Part shown: one piece after another, positions 6,001-33,084 of the stretch
How positions within the stretch are numbered: the first letter of the stretch is position 1
Layout of the letters: each line of letters starts with the position of its first letter
Assembly: GCA_038496445.1 (NCBI GenBank)
Contig: JALMLS010000376.1
Location: forward strand, 310,001-374,000
From: Trichosphaerium sp. ATCC 40318
Taxonomy: Eukaryota; Protista; Tubulinea
Length of the DNA: 64,000 bases
Reading direction: 5' to 3'
Made by a program: the position numbers and the translations under genes
Notes under the pieces: model-generated
Databases searched by the model: none
Told to the model about the DNA's origin: nothing
Seen by the model: only the letters and a program-made list of their open reading frames with translations

Positions 6001-8648
6001 TTCCATACAACTTTAGTAATCTTCTGCGCAGCAAGTTCTTTAGTAGCGTCATCTAATTTACCCACTCTAAAAAAAAATTCGTGTCAGTAGCTACTGTGCC
6101 AAAAATTTATTGGAAAGTGGAGGTGTACATACCCATCACTGAGAACTTTTTTCAAGTGGTAATCCCAGATGTATGTAATAGATTTTGTTTGGTTATCTTG
6201 AGTGAGCTCTTTAAACTCATCAGATGTAATAAACGTCCAATCAATCTAAAAGAAAAACCTCGTCAAAAAAAACTGGACAGAGAATTCGTCAAAGAGAACA
6301 TACTTCAATAGGTATTGTTTTATCAATCTTATCATCAAGGAACTTTTGGCAATCTTCAAGCTTCTCTTTGGAATCACGGATTCCTAGTGGACCTCGTAGC
6401 TTAAATATCTCCTCTAAAATCAACATAAGAAACCAGACAAGACAACAAGAAAAAATTAAGTACCAAGTTTTTTGTTAAAGTAGTAACAATCGCTGGAGTA
6501 CTTGTCCAAGTTCTGAGTGATTGTCATTACACCATTTTCTAGTGTCACTTCGTAGTACTTATATCCGCCAACTTCGTCATCAACTTCACTTTCAGGGTCG
6601 TAACGGAAGATAATTTGGTTGACTTTCTTTTGGATTTGTTCTTTCCAAAGGTCATCCTTATCAGCTATACCACCAAGACTAACAAAAAAGTGAGATAAAA
6701 AAATCGCATCAACAAATCACGTGATTCAACTAATAAAAAACGTCTTCTTACCCAGCACTCCTATCAGTGAGTGTTTTTTTCAAATGATAATCCCAGATGT
6801 AATCTAATTGTTTAGTAATATCGGTGAGCCTTTCTTGCTTAGCAAAAGCTTCGTGACTTGCGAAAAAGCTAAAGTCAATTGCAATAGGAATCTAAAACAA
6901 CGTATTAGGATTATGTTAAGGCAGCATTTAGACGAAGTTACCTTTTTCTCAATTTGGTCTTCTAAAGCTTCCTCTATCTCAGATAGCTTTTCAACTGATT
7001 TTGCAATACCCTGGGCAATACGCAAGTTTAAGATTGGGTCCATCTTATCTTTCATATTGTAGCAATCGCTGCCTGAAAAGGAAAAAAGAGTTAGCAGACG
7101 TCCAAAAGAAATTAACAAGTAGCAAAAAGAACGCACTGTATTTTCCCAAGTTTTGTGTGATTACGAGAACACCTCCAAGTAGCTCTACTTTGTAGTACTT
7201 GTAACCCCCTAATAAAAAAGTGAGACATAAGAAAACAACAAAGACCTTAAAGATGGCTGCTATCACGCACCGACATCATCATCAACCTCATCGCTAGGGT
7301 CGTATCGGAACATGACTTTATTGATACGCTCTTGTACTGCTTTTTTAGTTACCTCATCCTTCTCACACATCCAACCGAGTCTGAATTGATGACATGTTAG
7401 AACAAACAAACAAGAAAGTTGCGTTAATTACCCGTTGCTATCAAGAAGTGTCTTCTTAAGGTGATAATCCCAGATATAACTCATAATCTTTGTCCAATCT
7501 ACAAGCTTGTTCTCTTTGAAGGCTATGAAGAAAAGGTTAATAAAAACCCATAAGAAGTATGCTACCACCCCCCCAAAAAAGTCATCTTGTCAACATATAC
7601 AAGAGTTTCCCACATGTGTTTAAACTAACCTTCAGACTCAACAAAGAAGTTCCTAGAAGTAGGTTAGTTTCAAACCAGTAAGTGAACAGTTTATAAGTGC
7701 TCCAAGAGTAAGGTAATGTCGTACCAATCGATGACAACTTCAATTTTCTTTTCGACTTTATCTTCTAGTTTTTCAACAATTTCTTCCAACTTTTCAATTG
7801 AATCACGAATACCCTGCTTGATTCGCAATCGAAAGATATCATCTAAAACAATAATAGTAAGTACGGTTACCAATTAGGATGTAATGGAATTTAAAAAAAG
7901 TGTCTACCGTAGATTGTTGCCGCTTGGTAAAGATCGCTTGTGCACTTTTCGAGGTTTTGAGTTATCTTGAGCGTTTTACCCTCCAAAACGATATTATAGT
8001 ACCTAATGTACGTTAATACGATTACCAAGTGTTTAGAGCGTACTTGTAGCTATTAACCTCGTTCTCTACTTCGTTTTCTGGATCGTAAGCGAATACTACT
8101 TTATCTACCTTTTCTTGTATCTCTTTCATCCATATTTCGTCTTTTGTGCACAGCGCACCAAGTCTACGCTTTCGTAAATAAAAATAACGTTTATTGTTAA
8201 CGCTCCAAATAAAGAAACACGTTAAAAGTAGTATAAAGGCGGCTGGATTGAACTACAAGGTAATGGACAAAATATCGTCGGAGTAAACCAACGATACATA
8301 AAAATACATTATACGTTGAGTATAGAACCGCCAGTGTGTTAAAATTTGTTCAAAATGCGTTTTAAGCTTTTGTAGAAAAAAACGTTTGTAACGCACGAAT
8401 CACTGTTGGCTGTAAGAGCTTTCACCAAGTGGTAGTCTCCAATATACGTTACAGCGTTTTTTTGGGCATTCTCAGACAACTACAACAATAAGGGCTATAC
8501 CACTGCTCAAACTACGCACGTCTTTGAAGTCAGCATGGTCTAGAAAAGCGAAATCGACCTCTATGGCTATTTTCTTTTCTACTTTATCTTCAAGGGTGTC
8601 AGCCAGATCAGAGATCTTTTCAAGCAGAGCTGCCTTGTGAGAAGCCAT
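1..8648 (-). CDS. Giant tandem-repeat protein (about 13 copies of a ~120-aa unit, Pro/Ala/Thr linker, coiled coil, C-terminal CxxCxGxG-like zinc motifs); multi-exon, 3' end outside window
   Basis: ATG at 8648 (MASHKAALLEKI). Exons join via GT-AG introns. Recurring unit: IxIxVDWxF...LGxxxxD...KIxFxYDPxxxV...GGxYxxY.V.L....L.IxxNL. Ends CTWCKGTRLKK / CRCGGCSGGG at the window edge. Confidence 0.8.
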
Positions 8649-22028: not shown

Positions 22029-24226
22029 ATGTCAACGCACAGACGCAATCATATCGAGCTAGAGGACATTGAACATTACGACGATAATGCTTCCGGACCT
22101 GTTCCGGCGTCTAGTGCCTGGCCAACTTCTGTAAAGTATATTTTGGGATGCGAGTTATGCGAACGGTACAATTTGTACAGGTAATAGCACCTTACGCGAC
22201 ACAGGTTCTCGTACTATGGCATTAGATCAATTTTGTTGGTATACCTAACAGAAGCCATTAAAATGAGCGATGACAATGCAACCGTAACTCTCCATCTTTT
22301 CATAGCGTTGGCATACTCCTCTGCGATAGTTGGTGGTATTATATCAGATTCTTGGCTAGGTGAGTGTTGAATGCTCTACAACGATCAATTACGCGTGGGA
22401 GATGCTAATATGGTGTAGGAAAATACAATACAATACTATACGTGTCTATTCTGTACACTATTGGCGGTGGTGTGCTTAGCGTCACTGCAATACCATGTAA
22501 GCGCAAAAAACCCCAAATTTACTGACACTTTGTAGCATCAGGCAATATTTGGGGAATGGCTGCAGGATTGCTTATTATAGCGCTCAGTACAGGTGGTACG
22601 TATAATAAACGCGGTATTGAACTTTTAACCAAGAGGTAAGGAATAAAATCGAGTGTATCAACATTTATTGGAGATCAGCTTCCTGAAGCACGTGAGGATG
22701 ATATGACGAGCATATTCCATTTGTTTTACTTTAGTATTAATTTGGGCTCACTCTTTTCAACATTTCTGACACCTATTCTTAAAGTGTACGCCTCTAACTT
22801 GAATTTCAAAAATAACCAATGTTATTAAAGTTTTTCTTTAGACATTTCAACTTTGCTATTGCGTTTGGTGTTCCAGCTATTTTATTGGGTATTGCTACGT
22901 TTATTTTCTGGCTTGGTAAGAAACAATATGTTAAGGTATACTATAGTAAAGCTGCGCAGCATTGTATGTAAAACTAAAACAGTACAGGTTCCACCGACGC
23001 CGAATCTGTTTGTGAAAAGTATTAAAGTGCTTTGGTATTCCTTTAGAGGATACTGGCGTTCAAAAGGAACTGATACAAATAAGAGCTTCTTTCGACATGC
23101 TGAAGGACATTTTCCGGTTGCATTTATTGATGACGTTAAACAAGTATGTTAGTTCTTAATGCGGGAAAATGATTGCTAATTTTTTATCCAAGACGTTGAG
23201 AACATTTTTATTCTTTGTTCCCCTACCTATTTTTTGGAGTTTATGGGATCAATACTCTTCGCGTTGGGTTCTTCAAGGACTCCAAATGAATACTGAAATA
23301 GGTGGCTGGAAAATAGAGGCAGAACAAATGCAAGGTATATTCACTGAATTTATTAATTATTCGATTTTAATTTATTCTTAGTTCTCAATCCACTGTTTAT
23401 CTTGATTCTCATTCCTGTATTCAACAGTATTATCTACGCAGGTTTTAAACGTTGCAATATTACATTAGATCCACTAAAGCATAAGATGGGACCTGGTATA
23501 TTGTTACTTGGACTTTCATTTGTTGTAGCTGGATTTTTACAGCTTTCGATTGATAGCTCTCTTGTTGCTCCTTTGCCTTCAACCAACACAACTATGATAC
23601 CAACCACATTATCACCAACCTTCAATGTTAGCGCCCCAAGTAACTCTACATTAGCACCAGGTAACCGCATTTCAAATATTCATAAACACTCGACGCTGAT
23701 TCACTCTTTAGTTGCACCAACAAGCAATATTTCTGTCCTTTGGCAAATACCACAATACTTCCTCGTATGTCGAAAAAAACTTCACCTCTTTTGTTCCAGC
23801 CTATTGGCACATTGCGATTCTAACTCTTAGTGCTAGATGTGTTGTGGAGAAATACTTGTTTCAATAACAGGCCTTGAATTTGCTTATACTCAAGCACCTA
23901 AAGCTATGAAAAGTGTTGTCATGGCAGGATTCTTACTTACAACAGGTTTGTGTGACACAATCTTTTTTTTTCTGTATTTGCATTGTTTGTAACGTGTGTT
24001 TGTTGTAGCTCTTGGCAATTTGCTTGTAGTTGCTTTTGCTCATGTAAATTTTGGCGGTTCTCAAGCCTATGCTTTCTTTTTTTTCGCAGGTCTCATGGCT
24101 GTCTTTGACGTGATTTTTCTCGTCATAAACTGGAATTTCAAGTACCGTAGTGCTGAGCCTGCAAACTTGGACGTTTTTGATACAGTTGAGTTTGATGTAT
24201 TACTTGAAGAAGAAAAAGACATCTAA
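22029..24226 (+). CDS. Proton-dependent oligopeptide transporter (POT/PTR2, SLC15-like)
   Basis: ELCERFSYYG (ExxERFxYY), [57 protein letters not shown]. Confidence 0.95.
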
Positions 24227-24732: not shown

Positions 24733-27700
24733 ATGGAAAAGGATGAAGACGAGAACGTTACTAAGGCCAAAGCGTTATTGACGCTAAAGGATAGCTTAGG
24801 TACTTGTATTACATGTTCTAGACGCTTACTAAAAATAAAACGTCTAATTAGGCCCTTTCTATGAGGAGCAGAAGCAAATACTGCTTTCCAGTGTATGTCA
24901 AAAGCCGTTGGTAGAAGCAGCCTCAGTTTTGAAAGAGCTTGCTTCTAGCAAGTTTATAACCACTGATGAGGTGGCTCAATGGACAGTTAAACTCATGACA
25001 TCTTCTGTTGGTTCGTATTACGGCCAATCGGCTTATTAGGGTTTTTCAACGCGTTAGACATTGTATTGATTAAACTAGGAGCGCCTGTAGTGCCAGTTGT
25101 AGCAAAACCAGCGCCAGCTGCGCCATCGCCTGAGCTGGAAGCTTCAAAGCCACCAGAACCACAACCAGAGGCTAGCGCTCAAAAAGCAAAAACAATTATG
25201 TGGGGAGACGTAGAAATAACACCACAAACAACACTAGTGTCGCTTCAAAAAGAACTGGCGTACGTAATACACAGTGCCAAGGTCCCTTGAAAAGTTAACA
25301 TACTAATTTTGCTAAAACAGCAACTTTGCATTTCAGTTAATTGCGTGTCAACACATAAGTTAATTTTTTGAAACCCTCTTTAGAAAGCGTGTAAATGCAT
25401 CTGAGACAGATATTGAACTTCTTGTTGTTACATTACAAGCTGAGTTTAATACGAATACTCTTGATGATTTGATTGCTCTTGATAAAAAGGACAGAGCCTT
25501 TCACGTGCTTGATGATTTTGAGACTTATATGATAAGTTTGTTTCGTATGGCTGTCGCTGCTATTGTAGTTCTACCTTGCTTTGGTATGTTAGCTTCCTGG
25601 TTTTTTGTGTTGGTGTTGTTGACAAGAGTTTTCCGTAGAACAAGCTATTAAAAAAGAGGAGGAAAAAAAAAAGAGTATCGAGCTCAAAGCACAAAAGGAT
25701 GAAGAATCGCTATCTCAAATGTTAACTTTATGGAATGAACAAGGTGCTAATATGATGTTACTTCCTCTAAATACAAAGGTAAAGTTCAAGCAAACAATTT
25801 GCGCACAGTGAAAAATGTTGCAACATGTAATACCTTTTCAGGTGTACTACTTTGCTGCAATCGAACGTAAAGATGCCCGTGAGGTCACTAAAGAGTCAAA
25901 AGAACATATCTTATTTTTCTTGGATATAAGTAGCTCTATGAATCACAACGAAAGAGGTATATCTGAGTATTCATTGTTATCAATACAGTGGCTAACCCTC
26001 TTGCTAGGTAGATACCTTCCTCCTAAAAGCATGGACCATCCAGCTTCAAGCATTAAACAAGCCAGAGGACTCATTGCTCCAATTGCTCTTGCTGCTATGA
26101 AGGTAACAGCACGTTTGTAAGTTTGTTGTAGCTGATTGTTCTCGTCTTAGAGAGGCTCTTCCTTTTCCATTATACCATGGAACAGTAAAGTCAACCCAAA
26201 AATTACTTTCTTACCAGAAGAGTTTATGGTACGTAAAATGCATATCTTACTGTGCGTTTTTAGTTCAGTTCAAAACGGTAACTTAGCGCACACTTCAGCA
26301 CGTTATACGGACAGTTTTAATTGCTTTTAATGCTAGGAAGAGGACGGAAACCTTGGTATTGATGCGAACATAACAGAAACCATAGAGGCTAGAACAGGAC
26401 CTACTATATTTACAGCACGTGGCCAAACTAACATGGAAGCTGCATTGAATTCTTGCAGTAGAGGCATTGAAAAGTTAGCCCCAAACGTATGAAACAAAAG
26501 TTGGTGTCTGTTTTTGTGATTGCTCATTAGTTCTTAGGCATCAAATATTATTATATGGTTCTTGACTGACGGTGAAGAAACGAGGTATGAAGTACCTGGT
26601 TCTAGATCTAAACCAATACCATCAAACCCACGTGATCCAAATTACCACTATTTTAACATGCAAAATCCGCAAGGTACCAATGATTATATTAATCATTACT
26701 TTTGTTTTAATATGTTGTTATTGTTATTGACTTATATTTTAAGGGCTAACTTCTTACCACTTGCACATGATAAAAAATTTCTCTACAGCATTAGATAAAG
26801 TTAAGAAGACGGCTAAAAAGTGTAAAGTCGAGTTTCACGTACAACAATCAAGGGCACTTCTTTTTTCTTGGAAATTTACAAAAAATTAGGTTTGTCACTT
26901 TGGAGATGCCAACCCTGTATTTTTAGATAAACTACGCCTTGCAGCAAATGGTAAGCTAAGGCGACAATAATTTTTGCTTCAAAAAACGCTGAGGCAATGC
27001 AGTTAACATTTCTTTTTTCAGGTCAATTTCATGCTGTCACAAATATTGAGAAACTCAAGGGCGAAATGTTGTCTTTGAATGCTGGAAGTGATTCAACGGT
27101 GACCATCGTATCTCCTAACTCTAATACAGAGGTTATTAAACCATGTGCAATGGGAGATGGCATGCTTTTTAGGTTCGTGACAAACAATCTTGTTTTATTG
27201 TTTTTTGGTTTCTTTGTTAACAGATGTATTTAGCCGTGGTGAGATTCCAACTCAATTATACCTTGAAGAGATCATTCCAGAAAAATCATTAAGCATTAAG
27301 TTTACTGACAATAGCGCACTGCTTGATAACTATGAATCATCTCCAGTCTCTATTGCTGTAGCCATGAGTACGTATCAAATAATAGGTTAATTATACTAAA
27401 ATGTTTCTGTAGGTGTTATGGAGATTGTCTCGTTGGAGCCTCAACTTGAAGTTATCATACAATCACTCACCCAAAATATTTCCACTGAACAGATTATCAA
27501 GGCTTCAAATGACTTAAATGAACTCAAGAGCGCCAGAATGACAGCTATTGCCAATGTGTTAAAGGTTTGTTACTCGAATTTTATTAACTAAGTTGTATCG
27601 ACTTCACTTTGTTTACAATTATGTTGATAGGTTATCAAATCCAACAGTCTCCTCCAAGCTTTCCTAGAAAAAACTCTAGAAGCTGTTGCTACTCAGATTG

Positions 27701-30700
27701 AGGCTCTAGAGCGCATGCTTGACCAAATTCAAAGGCCAGATCAAAAAGACTATAATGCATCTGCAGCCAAGAATACAGAACTTTTTACTGAAAGAGAACA
27801 ACTTGCTATCGCTGCAGGATTAGATTCAATGAAAGTTAACTTAGGTCATGGTATCGTAACAAGAAAAAACCTAGATAGGTGAGCTATTTATTGAACAAAA
27901 AGAATTGTTTTGTTAACTACTTTTTTCTCAAGACGAATTCAACGATTGGTTGCTAGTCGAGGCGTATGGGCAAGAACTATGTTAAGTAGACACTGTGAAA
28001 TTGTTTCAACAGAAAAAGGTACAAACTTTGATCACTATTTCTTTAAAACCTGGATGTGTATTGTTTGTCTTACAGTAATATGAAATTGTCAAGTCGACAT
28101 TTTATTGTTCTTATGCAAACTCTTTTTTTTTTGTGTTCTGACTTTGTCTTCCAAAGGAGATGTTACACTCTTGTCCTTACTCATATTTGATGAAAACGTT
28201 AGAAAGTACAGAGAAAGCTATATTGTGAAAACAATAGTATCTACAAACGACAATACACCTGAGTTTAGAGTCAAGCTTCTGAACAGTAAACAACGAACAT
28301 TGCAAGATAGATATTTCCATGGTGATAACGTAGAAGATGTTATGGTAGAAATTACAGCTTCGATTAAGGTTGATGGTTCTGTTTCTACTTTGAAACACGT
28401 GTTTAAAGTAGCTGAAGTGTACCCAAAACTAGTTGCACAGTACGTGCTCTTCACTTTGTTAATTTTGTTTCAAAGAAACAATTTCGCATTTTATTCTTAG
28501 TCTTATACTCTCAAAGGTATCATTGTACACCAAAGACAGACGATCTTGAAAATGCATCAAAAAGATTCTTTGACCCTCTATCATATTCAAGGTAAAAATA
28601 CCAACACAAGCCCTTCTTGCTTGCTTTGTTGTTTTCTGTTCTAACTACTTTAAATAGCTTTTTGGAACTCATTGGAGAAGGCAACACACTACCTGCATAC
28701 TGCTACAATATTGGAGAGAATCAATCCGTTGGATTGCTCTATAATGCCAAAGAATTACTTCATGTACAAGATGGAGGTTCAGATGGTACTTCCTTCTCTT
28801 ACTTCAGGTAAAGTCACAGTTATTAAATATTATCTTTTTAACACGCCCAAGGTTATACTGGCGTCTTGCAGCTAAGAAAGATACCAAGGCTGTTCGTATC
28901 CCTGGTACTTTCCACGACGCGAATTTTGCTCTTCCAATAGCCCCTGACCCATTATCCAATCTCGTGTTATCAAATCTCTTACCAGGACTCATCTCTGAAT
29001 TCGTCACAGGTAAACCTTGGTTTTTTTTTGTTTTGTTTTATTCCACTTGTTTGACTCTTGCTAGGTACTCCGTTTGCACCATTGGGTGAGATTGGTATCT
29101 TATATATTGGATACATTATGATGCACTTGAGGCAGGCCAATCACAGCGGAGTTGATATCGCACGTATCACAGAGATGCTGAGTTCGATGTCTGTTTGGAT
29201 TGACAACCCAAAAACAAATCCAAAAGTTGCAGATTTTCAAGGCATCATTGACAGAATGGTTGAAAAATGTGCTGTGCCAACAAGTGACTCTCCTGGAAAA
29301 TACATACCAGTTAAAGCGTTAATATTCGCTGTACTAGATGATAAACATGCTTCTGATGTTAAGCTAGAAGCTCTTCAAACTGAAACTTGGAGGCGATGTT
29401 TCAAGCTACTCTTAGGTAAAACAAAGGGTACAGCTGCTAAGAACATATCAAAATCACTTGAAGAAGTTCAATTGTTTGCACGTGATTGGGCGTTTGATCT
29501 TGTTCACAAACTCGCACCACTATTTAAGGTTCCTGAGGTACTCATCATATTGTTTGTTATCTTTTGGCTTTTGTACTTATCCTTGTATTAAGGGATACGA
29601 AGATGATCCAGAAGTACCATCTGATATTATTTATGTTGCTGAGAGGATATCACGAATGGTGAATGATCATACTGTTGCGACACCTGAAGATGAAATAATA
29701 GATTTCTTGAACACACCAAAGGTTTTACCTATCGTTATCAAATCTATTACAGACGTCATTCACGAACTAGGCACGCTAGTTTATATAAACCACAACTATA
29801 TTTTCTTACTTTGATATAATAGGTAACAAAGGTTTTGCTCATAACTTTAAATGGAGCTTTATTCAACGGTATTTATTCTGTTGTTGTGGTATGTTTGATA
29901 TGTCTATTACTGATCTCAAGGCTCGATTTGCAAATTACCAAGATACCGATGAGTTTGAAAATATATTGAGAAATCACCTTGCTTCTCTAAAGAATATGAT
30001 GACTTGGGATAATGTTCTGTTTTCTTGGATGGAAAAGGATAATGAAGGTTATGTTCATACGTGCCTTGAAATTCGTGATTCAGACCATCCAGACCAATTA
30101 CTATTGAGAAAAGTTTCCAAAAATATTGTATCAATATTCAACTACAATGACACAAAAGCTCCTGAAACTCGAAAGGTTTTACTCCGCTTGTGGACAATGT
30201 ACAAAAAAGTTCTTTTACAATGATTTTTTTGCTTATACTTTTAGGTACAAGCACGTGCTTAAGTTGAAAAAATGGTCAGGAAATAAATACACAGGCGAGG
30301 GATTGTTATCTATTGATTGGTTGGTTGTCAAAGCTCTTAAAGATTCTTCTGGAAAAATATTGGAGCAACTTTCACAAGCACAAAAATCAGTTTACAGCGC
30401 TGCCATGTCTTGGAAGCGTGATGACTACGCCAAGTGGGGTAAGATACTAATGTTGTTGTATGATACCTTAACAAAGTTTTAGCGCCACCAAAGAAAGAGA
30501 TTAAGCGTATTGAAAACTATACTGGTCGTGCCAGGCAATCAGCTCAAAGACCAACAGGAAAACCTAAGATTTCAGTTGTATTTATTGGAAATGTTGATGC
30601 TGGAAAGTCTACAACATCTGGTCATCTTATTGCCAAGTGCAATGGTATTAGTAAACACCAACTGGCTACCATGGAAAAAGAAGCAGCCAAAATCGGTACA

Positions 30701-32490
30701 AACCCTTGATGATTTGAAGAACTGAAGACAAAAACAAAAGTGTCATTCTAAGTATGACTTAGGTAAAACGTCCTTTAAGTACGCTTGGATTATGGATGGT
30801 CTCAAGGATGAAAGAGAAAGAGGTCTTTCTATTGACTTAGCAGTACGTTTTCGTATATCTATATTAGGTATTTCGTAACAGTTTCTAGCTATGGACTATT
30901 AAGACTGAAAAGTATGATGTCGATTTAATTGATGCTCCTGGCCACAAGGATTTCGTAAAAAATATGGCTTCTGGTGCTAGTCTGGCAGATGCTGCCGTGT
31001 TGTTAGTAGATGCTTCTCCTGGACACTTTGAGGAGGGATTAAAGAAAGATGGTAACATGAAAGGAGAACTTCAAATGGCGTTTACTCTTGGTACGTTTTC
31101 GTTGAAATAGCTTCTTATTATTTTCTTATTTTCACTGTTCAGGTGTAACAAACTTTATTGTTTGTATTAACAAAATGGATACTATTAATTACGATCAAAA
31201 AAGATACCAAGAAGTGCTTACTGAAACAATGAGGTGTATGAAGCGTATCGGTATAAAGGTACCTCGTTGTATCTTCATTCCAGTGTCGTCTTGGGTTGGT
31301 GAAAATCTCACTGTACCTACCACTAAAATGCCTTGGTATAAAGGCTGGTCGGTAAGAACTATTAGTCTATCTAATTGTAGTGTTCCTAAATCAATTGCCT
31401 AGACCACAAAGAGAGGCGGAGATATAGTAAAAGGCAAAACCCTTTTAGAGGTAAGCAACTCTGTCTTGTTCGCTCATTTTTCTTGACAGTTACGCTCACT
31501 CTATGTTAGGCAATCAACTCAATAAACACACACGAACGCGCCATTTCAATGCCTCTCAAGATTCCAATCTTAATGCTGCACAAGATTGGTGGCGTAGGTA
31601 ATAGATTCACATTAACTACTTGTAGCAGCTAAACACGCAAATTAGGAACTGTTGCTGTTGGACGTGTTGCTTCTGGTACACTAAAAGCTGGTGAAGAGAT
31701 TTGTATTTGTCCTCTGGGTGATAAACCATGGAAAGTTGGAGCCATTGAAATTAATCACTCAAATATCTCTGAGGTACATTAAAAACTATCTAAACAACAA
31801 TGTCCTTATATTTTCTTACTTTATTCTTTAGGCTTATCCAGGAGATTTGGTTGGTTTCAATGTTAAAGGTTTAGGGCCTCGTACATATGCTCGTGGTGCT
31901 GTAGCGTATAAACCTTCTGAAGGACCTTTACCCCAAGTAAGAAGGTTTTTAGCCCAAGTTGTTATCGTGTCTCACAGTACGTTCTTAAACATAACTATAA
32001 ATGCTTTATGTTTGTTTTTCTAATACGTTTCCACAGAGAACATCAAAGAAGGTTACCTTCCTTACTTTTTTGCACATACTGCTAGTTTCCCTTGTAAATT
32101 CGCAAAGCTTGTCGCTAGAATAGATAAGAGGACAGGAAAGGTGATTGAGAAAGATCCTAAGAGCCTCAAGACAGGTGACGCTGCTAACGTTATTATGGAG
32201 CCTACAAATGCTCAAGCTTTACAACCTTACAAAGACTTTCCACCACTTGGTACGTCTTTGATTATTATAATGGCTTTTTTGCTTCTTTAAGGGCGCACGT
32301 GCGCCTTAAAATGGAAGTTTTCCGCCTCAAACAACGTAAGTTTATGCTGATTGTGGTTTTTAAAGGGCGGTTTGTTGTTCGTGATCAGAGTGAAGTTGTT
32401 GCATTTGGTTTGGTTCGTGAGATTCTTGAGTTTAAAGAACAAAGAGGCCCAAGGAAGAAGATTAGCACTAAAAGTAAATACTTGAGATAA
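24733..32490 (+). CDS. Large fusion protein: N-terminal helical region + VWA domain (MIDAS) + long unknown region + C-terminal EF-1alpha-like translational GTPase (domains I-III)
   Basis: FFLDISSSM (25923), [17 protein letters not shown] (26565). GTPase motifs GNVDAGKS (30587), [45 protein letters not shown]. Continuous frame across the 44-nt intron 30439-30482. Confidence 0.8.
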
Positions 32491-32571
32491 AAAATTTTCT
32501 TCAAATCATTAATAAAAGGCTAAGATTCTTAAACGTTTACGTCGTTGTTGTTTGGTACAAACGGGAAAGGT

Positions 32572-33084
32572 TTATTGCTCTTTCTTAGGTAGGATCGTGC
32601 AACCTGCTCGTTTAGCCAAGTTTTCTAGCCATACTTGATGGAACTTGACTAATCCTGTACTCCATGCTTCCTTGTTCTCGAAGGCGAACTCTCCTTTTTG
32701 TACTTCCTCTGTTACAATCCTAATGCATTCTTCCTCTTCAATAATAACCCACGCGTGGTAAGCTATTAGTTGAGGACCAACACCGCGCCAAGCGATGGCT
32801 TTGTTTTGTTCAAACTCTTCAATTACACAGGCGGCTTGTAATCCAAATGTCTCCCATAGAAATATGCTTCCATGGCTAAGAGTTGCGTTCTCATCTGCCG
32901 GTTTACCAAAACTTGCTATACTGACATTCTTCGCGTTTTCATACCACTCAGGCCACTTTGTGGCAGCAATCAATGTAGAAAATATTTTTGAAATGTCACC
33001 TTTTACGCAAATGTCATTGTAGGCATAAATAGGAGCAATTGCTGGATTCAGATCCAGTGGCCATTTTATCTTAGAATTTTTCAT
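32572..33084 (-). CDS. SRPBCC/polyketide cyclase-dehydrase-like (START-fold) protein, intronless
   Basis: Single 170-aa ORF with WPEWYENAKNV, FLWETFG, AIAWRG, AYHAW, VTEEVQKG, HQVWLENL. Confidence 0.8.
   Translation of the reverse strand: MKNSKIKWPLDLNPAIAPIYAYNDICVKGDISKIFSTLIAATKWPEWYENAKNVSIASFGKPADENATLSHGSIFLWETFGLQAACVIEEFEQNKAIAWRGVGPQLIAYHAWVIIEEEECIRIVTEEVQKGEFAFENKEAWSTGLVKFHQVWLENLAKRAGCTILPKKEQ

Follow-up and report, generated by a model that had tools for sequence, protein, structure and literature searches.

Predicted fusion of a VWA domain with an eEF1A-like GTPase in a conserved protist protein family

Introduction

To our knowledge, a distinct translation-control pathway has come to light with each known case in which the EF1A fold was re-used (eRF3, Hbs1, Ski7, GTPBP1/2 and the SelB type). 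In eRF3, Hbs1 and Ski7, an EF1A-like GTPase forms the C-terminal part of the protein and is preceded by a lineage-specific N-terminal arm, which recruits partners. Here, we describe a gene from Trichosphaerium sp. ATCC 40318 (Tubulinea) whose predicted product follows the same design. The gene lies at positions 24733 to 32490 (+ strand) of a stretch of 64,000 nucleotides that is referred to below as the window (GenBank assembly GCA_038496445.1, contig JALMLS010000376.1, positions 310,001 to 374,000 of the forward strand). While the extensions of eRF3, Hbs1 and Ski7 are short or disordered and lack a VWA domain, the window protein joins a VWA domain, through a long middle region, to the three domains of an eEF1A-like GTPase.

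The VWA domain has its closest described counterparts in adaptors that carry a metal-ion-dependent adhesion site (MIDAS), namely integrin I domains, the MIDAS domain of Rea1/midasin, RGLG, ITIH and the pilus adhesins. These adaptors have the DxSxS...T...D site and a Rossmann-like VWA fold in common with the window protein, but in none of them is a translational GTPase attached. At the other end of the protein, all three domains and the G1, G3, G4 and G5 motifs are shared with eEF1A, from which the window protein differs by an N-terminal extension of 1400 residues. Unconventional EF1A-like GTPases tied to surveillance have also been described: two reports present GTPBP1 and GTPBP2 in these terms, with GTPBP1 delivering aminoacyl-tRNA (PMC6120710, PMC12775451). 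The architecture of GTPBP1 and GTPBP2 differs from that of the window protein and has no VWA domain.

Results

Gene structure and the junction between the two parts

The splice model starts at the ATG at 24733 and stops at the TAA at 32488-32490. It comprises 35 exons and 34 introns (33 GT-AG and one GC-AG), with 1868 codons plus stop, and thus encodes a protein of 1868 amino acids. The locus has a G+C content of ~37%, and its coding sequence is cut into many short exons, the median intron length in the final model being 55 nucleotides (n = 34). The model was obtained by dynamic programming and then mended with RNA contigs and a homologue profile.

A first-pass annotation of the window had described a single reading frame running from the VWA domain into the EF1A domains. 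Both the homologues and the hidden Markov model (HMM) scores described below bear out the single gene, but GT-AG introns alone do not carry the frame through. If only GT donors are allowed, the frame from upstream runs into a TGA at 29812-29814, and an ATG at 29891, 76 nucleotides further on, opens the next frame. An initial model limited to strong GT donors stopped at 29814, hinting at two genes, and was overturned by homology. Because of this stop and the ATG that follows it, we used homologues to decide between one gene and two, the alternative being a VWA protein that ends at TGA 29812 and an adjacent EF1A-like gene with a leader of 200 residues that begins at ATG 29891.

The exon at 29067-29537, in the middle region upstream of the junction, was searched against 1.8 billion representative proteins and returned 26 matches; all relatives described here were found with this exon as the query and are referred to by P numbers. 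In all six long matches that were scanned, Pfam GTP_EFTU was found at or near the C-terminus, in four of them together with D2 and/or D3. The full-length members end ~720-780 residues past the match to this exon, which is the distance expected if the two halves of the window gene are joined. Five of the relatives (P0001, P0003, P0006, P0014 and P0015) are collinear in tblastn with window positions 25686-32251, from the VWA domain to domain III. The model also aligns end to end with P0033 (1847 residues, 38% identity) and with P0034 from Balamuthia (2035 residues, 36% identity); in these alignments, which used the initial exon borders, residues 9-1871 of the model correspond to residues 10-1822 of P0033. 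Some of the evidence is independent of splicing. P0033, with its 1847 residues, is encoded by one unbroken open reading frame (ORF) of 5544 nucleotides on a Logan contig, which shows, along with the collinear full-length relatives, that the fusion is genuine and ancient. The members from Mastigella and Copromyxa are transcript sequences assembled with Trinity, and P0001, P0015 and P0004 occupy almost entire contigs of 5.1, 5.7 and 2.7 kb. In a further assembly, GCA_040384145.1, the gene was called as two ORFs, between which lies an ordinary GT-AG intron within the G domain.

At the junction itself, the frame-2 sequence at 29823-29890 aligns with the homologues, and its Trp (codon within 29846-29866) is present in all nine homologues aligned there; coding sequence therefore lies upstream of ATG 29891. 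The only join that retains this sequence is an inferred GC-AG intron of 52 nucleotides (29771..29822, + strand), which takes out the in-frame TGA at 29812 and has the sole non-GT donor of the model. This donor reads tag/GCACGC, compared with GTACGT as the usual donor of the genome. Among 104 stop-free models of the interval, the GC-AG model ranked first against the family HMM with 2004.9 bits, 35 bits ahead of the best GT-only model (1969.5 bits) and 32 bits ahead of the two-gene split (1229.7 + 743.5 = 1973.2 bits summed). A GT-AG intron of 142 nucleotides (29779-29920) scored 1957.2 bits, 48 bits worse than the GC-AG model, and was rejected; it removes conserved residues. The ranking of the 104 models refers to full-length models of the junction at 29.7 kb, an earlier scoring on fixed slices having been dropped for its bias towards sequence-deleting models. 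As a separate observation, the GC donor at 29771-29822 could alternatively reflect a polymorphism of the strain or an erroneous base, no read lying over the site.

Taken together, the region 24733-32490 is almost certainly a single expressed, spliced gene in which the VWA and eEF1A-like parts are fused. Two adjacent genes would account for the stop of the GT-AG-only frame, for the ATG 76 nucleotides beyond it and for the fact that no RNA contig bridges 29744-29957. They would leave unexplained the conserved residues ahead of that ATG, the higher score of the fused model, the GTPase carried downstream of the query exon by its long homologues and the unbroken frame of P0033, and we consider that such an arrangement has hardly any chance of being correct. 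The first-pass annotation had also judged two genes unlikely, and the collinear homologues and the conserved residues upstream of ATG 29891 agree with that judgment.

The middle region is joined to the GTPase exon by a second intron of interest, a GT-AG intron of 44 nucleotides (30439..30482, + strand). As had been noted from the sequence, it lies in frame, and no in-frame Met is found between its acceptor and G1. The resulting join, ...DDYAKW/APPKKEIKR, falls in a Y..W.P..E context that is conserved in all homologues. This intron came out best among 40 alternatives, but in a scoring run whose design we judged to be biased.

Elsewhere in the model, four initial choices were rejected: the intron 28019-28093 was replaced by 28019-28156 on the basis of an RNA loose end, 30699-30762 by 30696-30762, 28764-28807 by 28808-28851, and the intron 26117-26152 with a micro-exon of 9 nucleotides by the introns 25957-26007, 26103-26150 and 26229-26336. 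The last intron, of 116 nucleotides (32250-32365), passes over open-frame sequence (ORF 32299-32490) and is skipped in the RNA contigs of two runs.

RNA evidence

Logan contigs from four RNA-type runs were placed on positions 26520-32510, and fitting contigs were present in three of the runs. Their depth is low (~2-12). Spliced contigs confirmed 14 GT..AG junctions across 26.6-32.4 kb, loose ends fit four more, and most exons are covered by contigs from three runs. The supported joints include 30199-30244, on the side of the middle region. In the GTPase part, all introns from 30843 onward are seen as splice joints in RNA contigs, with the exception of 31091-31142. The joints seen are 30696-30762, 30843-30888 and 31352-31402 in the G domain, 31451-31509, 31598-31645 and 31774-31831 in the domain II part, and 31977-32036 and 32250-32365 in the domain III part. 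The introns in 25058..25778 lie outside the RNA coverage.

In the three runs with fitting contigs, no RNA contig was found over 29744-29957 or ~30326-30542. Since the latter interval holds the intron 30439-30482, the RNA reads do not settle the fusion in this species. Spliced RNA across this intron had been suggested as a check; the contigs miss it, although 14 other junctions were confirmed.

Single-base differences between the RNA contigs and the window occur at 28383, 29261, 29678, 31674 and 32113-32167. In one run, a further contig departs from the window at 4-5 positions within 32078-32197. Differing alleles or strains, or else a close paralogue, may account for this.

The eEF1A-like GTPase module

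All three EF1A domains reported by the first-pass annotation were recovered by Pfam, on separate exons. The G domain (30560..31450, + strand) matches GTP_EFTU (PF00009) on three exons (E = 4e-7, 1e-13 and 7e-5), with G1 in 30560-30610, DAPGH at 30931-30945, NKMD at 31169-31180 and SSW at 31286-31294. It is followed by eEF1A domain II (31510..31976, + strand), which matches GTP_EFTU_D2 (PF03144, E = 1e-6), and by domain III with a basic tail and the stop (32037..32490, + strand, including the intron 32250-32365), which matches GTP-eEF1A_C (PF22594, E = 1e-16). The full-length homologues all carry the same GTPase domains.

In a phmmer search of the PDB sequences with the P0033 module, the highest score was obtained for eEF1A (526 bits), followed by aEF1A (408), Hbs1L (273), eRF3a (261), CysN (127) and EF-Tu (~95). 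The 51 PDB sequences with a match at E<=1e-20 include no GTPBP chain. The closest database relatives of this module are ordinary eEF1As, with 51-53% identity. As far as sequence comparison can tell, the GTPase module is derived from eukaryotic eEF1A and not from the eRF3/Hbs1 branch. The earlier assignment to a divergent EF1A-family GTPase was thus correct and can be narrowed. Since the similarity to Hbs1 and eRF3 is far lower than that to eEF1A, the module would have arisen independently, from eEF1A, in spite of the design shared with those factors.

The module has diverged strongly from its presumed source. In the window protein, it is 45% identical to yeast-type eEF1A, while two canonical eEF1As are 79% identical to each other. 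A tree without outgroup was built from 14 canonical eEF1As and the modules of 11 family members; in it, the latter form one clade with a support of 1.0 and a long stem, with a tip depth of 1.24 as compared to 0.17 for the canonical proteins, corresponding to an evolution ~7x faster. The nucleotide-binding motifs have nevertheless been kept: GNVDAGKS, DAPGH, NKMD and SSW of the window protein fit the G1, G3, G4 and G5 patterns, and all 11 members retain G14, G19, K20, S21, D91, P93, G94, N153, K154, M155, D156 and S192. One Pelomyxa copy, P0003, may be hydrolysis-dead.

Other diagnostic positions have changed. The canonical G1 sequence GHVDSGKS has become GNVDAGKS, and this motif as well as RGLSI, NMKGE and AIEINH, all listed as drifted in the first-pass annotation, indeed depart from the 14 canonical eEF1As. 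The histidine of QTREH (H136) is replaced by Glu in nine of the 11 members. QDVY is not conserved across the family and reads LMLH in the window protein; GDNVG has Leu for its N in the window protein, and in most members the residue there is Leu, Val or Phe; and H365 and I366 have changed to S and F. We take the equivalents of QDVY and GDN to line the aminoacyl pocket in EF-Tu, and the QTREH histidine presumably affects aminoacyl-tRNA binding and GTPase control. The window protein therefore lacks the traits of a canonical eEF1A in its size (~460 residues in eEF1A), its rate of evolution (eEF1A being slow, with ~80% identity between kingdoms) and its aminoacyl-tRNA pocket with QTREH, and its module belongs to a separate, fast clade.

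The N-terminal domain and the VWA domain

The protein begins with a conserved helical domain of ~75 residues (24733..25010, + strand), which aligns from its first residues with P0033, P0034, P0003, P0015, P0014 and P0011 and for which no family match was found in Pfam. A Pro/Ala-rich linker and a weakly conserved helical stretch follow in the alignment (25058..25778, + strand), at the place where a sister clade has a 2H domain.

The VWA domain (25842..27113, + strand) was assigned from the family alignment and the fold model of a homologue. The elements of the MIDAS that had been read from the sequence are all present, with DxSxS in LDISSSMN (25920-25943), the T in GQTNMEAAL (26421-26447) and the D in WFLTDGEE (26556-26579). 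In the family alignment, the columns of the MIDAS T (GxT) and D (TDGE) are invariant, and DxSxS is found in every member that covers it. The fold was modeled with AlphaFold2 on the aligned region of P0003 from Pelomyxa, using an alignment of seven sequences (predicted local distance difference test, pLDDT, of 76). A Foldseek search of the PDB with this model gave 144 matches at E<=1e-3, led by VWA-type domains with E down to 1e-7; the top matches were the VWA domains of pilins, ITIH1, TRAP, TFIIH p34/p44, RGLG1, factor B and Sec24. Weak VWA matches were also obtained in a profile search of the PDB sequences (adhesins) and with Pfam in the homologue P0006, whereas the domain was missed by Pfam when the window exons were scanned one by one. 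On the basis of the P0003 model, we conclude that this region is a VWA domain with an intact MIDAS. It differs from the known MIDAS adaptors in that its sequence is too distant for Pfam and in that the family carries an unusual conserved insert past DxSxS (NH.E.G.Y..P.S.DH..SSIK.AR).

The middle region

The VWA and GTPase parts are separated by a middle region of ~880 residues (27114..30559, + strand), which the first-pass annotation had already found to resemble nothing recognizable. No meaningful match to it was found in Pfam, NCBIfam, PADLOC, the PDB sequences and profile search, Foldseek on the PDB, the AlphaFold database clusters, VIA wide or Atlas. Structure prediction of the middle region, which had likewise been proposed, was carried out on the equivalent part of P0033 with AlphaFold2 (13-sequence alignment) and gave a model with a pLDDT of 70 and a predicted template modeling score (pTM) of 0.54. 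According to this model, a small β domain would be followed by long three-helix bundles or coiled coil, a β-rich domain, a Pro/Leu-rich stretch, a helical domain predicted with confidence and a small β/helical end.

The most conserved part of the middle region lies at 28898..29537 (+ strand) and extends to ...ADSPGK..PVKA.... All eight invariant columns of the family alignment A2 and most of its near-invariant columns fall within this part, which is Pro/Leu-rich and of which the first half was modeled with low confidence.

Two apparent likenesses of the middle region were rejected. Not3/Not5-type N-terminal helical bundles bind the ribosomal E site, and a likeness to Not3/Not5/CNOT3 appeared both in Pfam (Not3, E = 0.017, exon 27631-27876) and in VIA (N-terminal bundles, Z ~9, model residues 64-168). 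These two hints match different parts of Not3, lie within the noise of helical bundles and represent a generic three-helix-bundle similarity. CATCHR tethering subunits were suggested by language-model features in Atlas, at scores of 0.59-0.79, below the noise level.

Family and distribution

Full-length collinear relatives were found in Balamuthia, Pelomyxa, Mastigella and Copromyxa as well as in further protists. The named members are from Pelomyxa schiedti (KAH3759243.1 and KAH3765923.1), Mastigella eilhardi, Copromyxa protea and Balamuthia mandrillaris (KAL6057492.1 and KAL6063334.1), genera which we take to span Evosea, Tubulinea and Discosea together. Its sequence places the window protein, as an orthologue-grade representative, within a conserved protist family that is found in all three major amoebozoan lineages.

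In a sister clade formed by P0011, P0014 and P0015, a 2H phosphoesterase domain (PF13563, E = 1e-22 to 1e-28) is placed between the N-terminal domain and the VWA domain. Pfam detected the domain in these three members only. The 2H domain is of the LigT-like, 2',3'-cyclic phosphodiesterase type; its first catalytic motif is H-I-N in these three proteins, compared with the usual H-x-T/S. The window protein does not contain a 2H domain (PF13563/PF02834), as seen from a gap in the alignment and from the lack of a Pfam match on its exons. At one locus of the sister clade (L001, 3001-8742, GCA_040384145.1), the gene caller had split the gene at a GT-AG intron of 54 nucleotides (7399-7452) inside the G domain.

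In the source records, members of the family are labeled 'elongation factor 1-alpha' (EF-1 alpha) or eRF3. The first-pass annotation had regarded the combination of VWA and EF1A domains as undescribed. Searches of full-text literature and a 2015 survey of translational GTPases yielded no description of a VWA-eEF1A protein, although the coverage was incomplete and this is absence of evidence only; the family itself is present, misnamed, in public data. These findings suggest a new eEF1A-derived subfamily of translational GTPases with a new architecture, so far unrecognized in public data.

The gene is flanked upstream by the 3' end of a POT/PTR2-family transporter gene (23402-24226, + strand, Pfam E = 1e-10) and downstream by a convergent single-exon ORF of 170 residues (32572-33084, - strand) without a Pfam match, whose stop lies ~80 nucleotides from that of the gene.

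Discussion

Because the replaced residues are those that presumably line the aminoacyl pocket, we read the family as a re-purposed EF1A factor. We tentatively propose a GTP-switched surveillance or adaptor factor directed to the ribosome or to tRNA, on the principle of eRF3, Hbs1, Ski7 and GTPBP, although we would put this role at slightly less than an even chance. The eEF1A-like end would be the GTP switch, docking at the ribosomal factor site and/or holding a tRNA-shaped ligand other than aminoacyl-tRNA. The N-terminal arm of 1400 residues would bring partners to this site, with the MIDAS clamping an acidic residue of a partner protein, and the 2H domain of the sister clade would act on RNA ends with a 2',3'-cyclic phosphate. 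Its task would then be to monitor or repair translation components that have been damaged, and not bulk elongation. Such a role is suggested by the nucleotide motifs, which were kept despite fast evolution, by the loss of the aminoacyl pocket, by the RNA chemistry to which the 2H domain points and by the deep collinear conservation of the family. The wider proposal, in which a new branch of translational GTPases born from eEF1A would couple a GTP switch that senses ribosomes or tRNA with a MIDAS clamp and, in the case of the sister clade, with an RNA-end enzyme, giving a new amoebal pathway of translation-damage surveillance or repair, is more speculative, and we regard it as rather doubtful as a whole.

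Several observations weigh against this interpretation. The junctions 29771-29822 and 30439-30482 have no read support in Trichosphaerium and rest on homology, and the GC donor of the former is unusual. The middle region, with no match to any of the libraries searched, offers no functional clue. Finally, P0003 (Pelomyxa schiedti KAH3759243.1) has DAPGT in place of DAPGH and has thereby lost the catalytic His, while P0006, the other paralogue from Pelomyxa, has retained DSPGH. Hydrolysis is therefore not required in every member.

The main rival explanation is that of an integrated bait or guard, in which the eEF1A-like end would mimic the eEF1A of the host, the binding or modification of this bait would be sensed, and a response would be triggered by way of the VWA domain and the middle region. 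In amoebae, eEF1A is a target of intracellular bacteria, and the Legionella effector Lgt glucosylates its Ser53. The GK.SFKYAW loop with the equivalent of Ser53 is kept in the window protein and in most members, as would suit a bait, but the equivalent of Ser53 has been lost in P0003, P0027 and P0014. A bait would also be consistent with the presence of the family, so far, in amoebae and other protists, with a module that evolves much faster than real eEF1A and yet keeps its fold and nucleotide motifs, and with the loss of the aminoacyl pocket, which is expected if the job of the module is not translation. The resemblance to the integrated decoys of plant NLRs, in which a copy of the target likewise sits inside a larger sensor, is an analogy only: no NB-ARC, LRR, TIR or death-type domain was found in the family, nor any signaling domain, and the family is ancient and collinear. 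Indeed, its collinearity across distant amoebozoan lineages and the conserved middle region of 880 residues look like those of a fixed machine and not of a bait with a fast turnover, and the 2H clade points to RNA chemistry. We therefore consider the bait unlikely.

A cytoskeletal role is conceivable as well, given that eEF1A also bundles actin in amoebae (ABP-50 of Dictyostelium). The paralogue would then have kept this activity, with the VWA domain and a coiled-coil or helical-rod middle region as a structural linker. The long helical bundles of the structure model would fit such a scaffold, and by language-model features the middle region is nearest to helical-rod tethering subunits, but these matches lie within noise. 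A scaffold would also leave unexplained the strict retention of G1, G3, G4 and G5 and the 2H domain of the sister clade, and we find it highly improbable.

The misnaming of the family as 'EF-1 alpha' or 'eRF3' can contaminate EF1A phylogenies. For the biology of these protists, the family would represent an independent re-use of the fold from eEF1A itself, joined to a metal-dependent adhesion domain and to 880 residues without a recognized fold. If the protein were a bait, it would be an example of a protist sensor that incorporates a mimic of an effector target; a function on ribosomes or tRNA would make it a new quality-control route.

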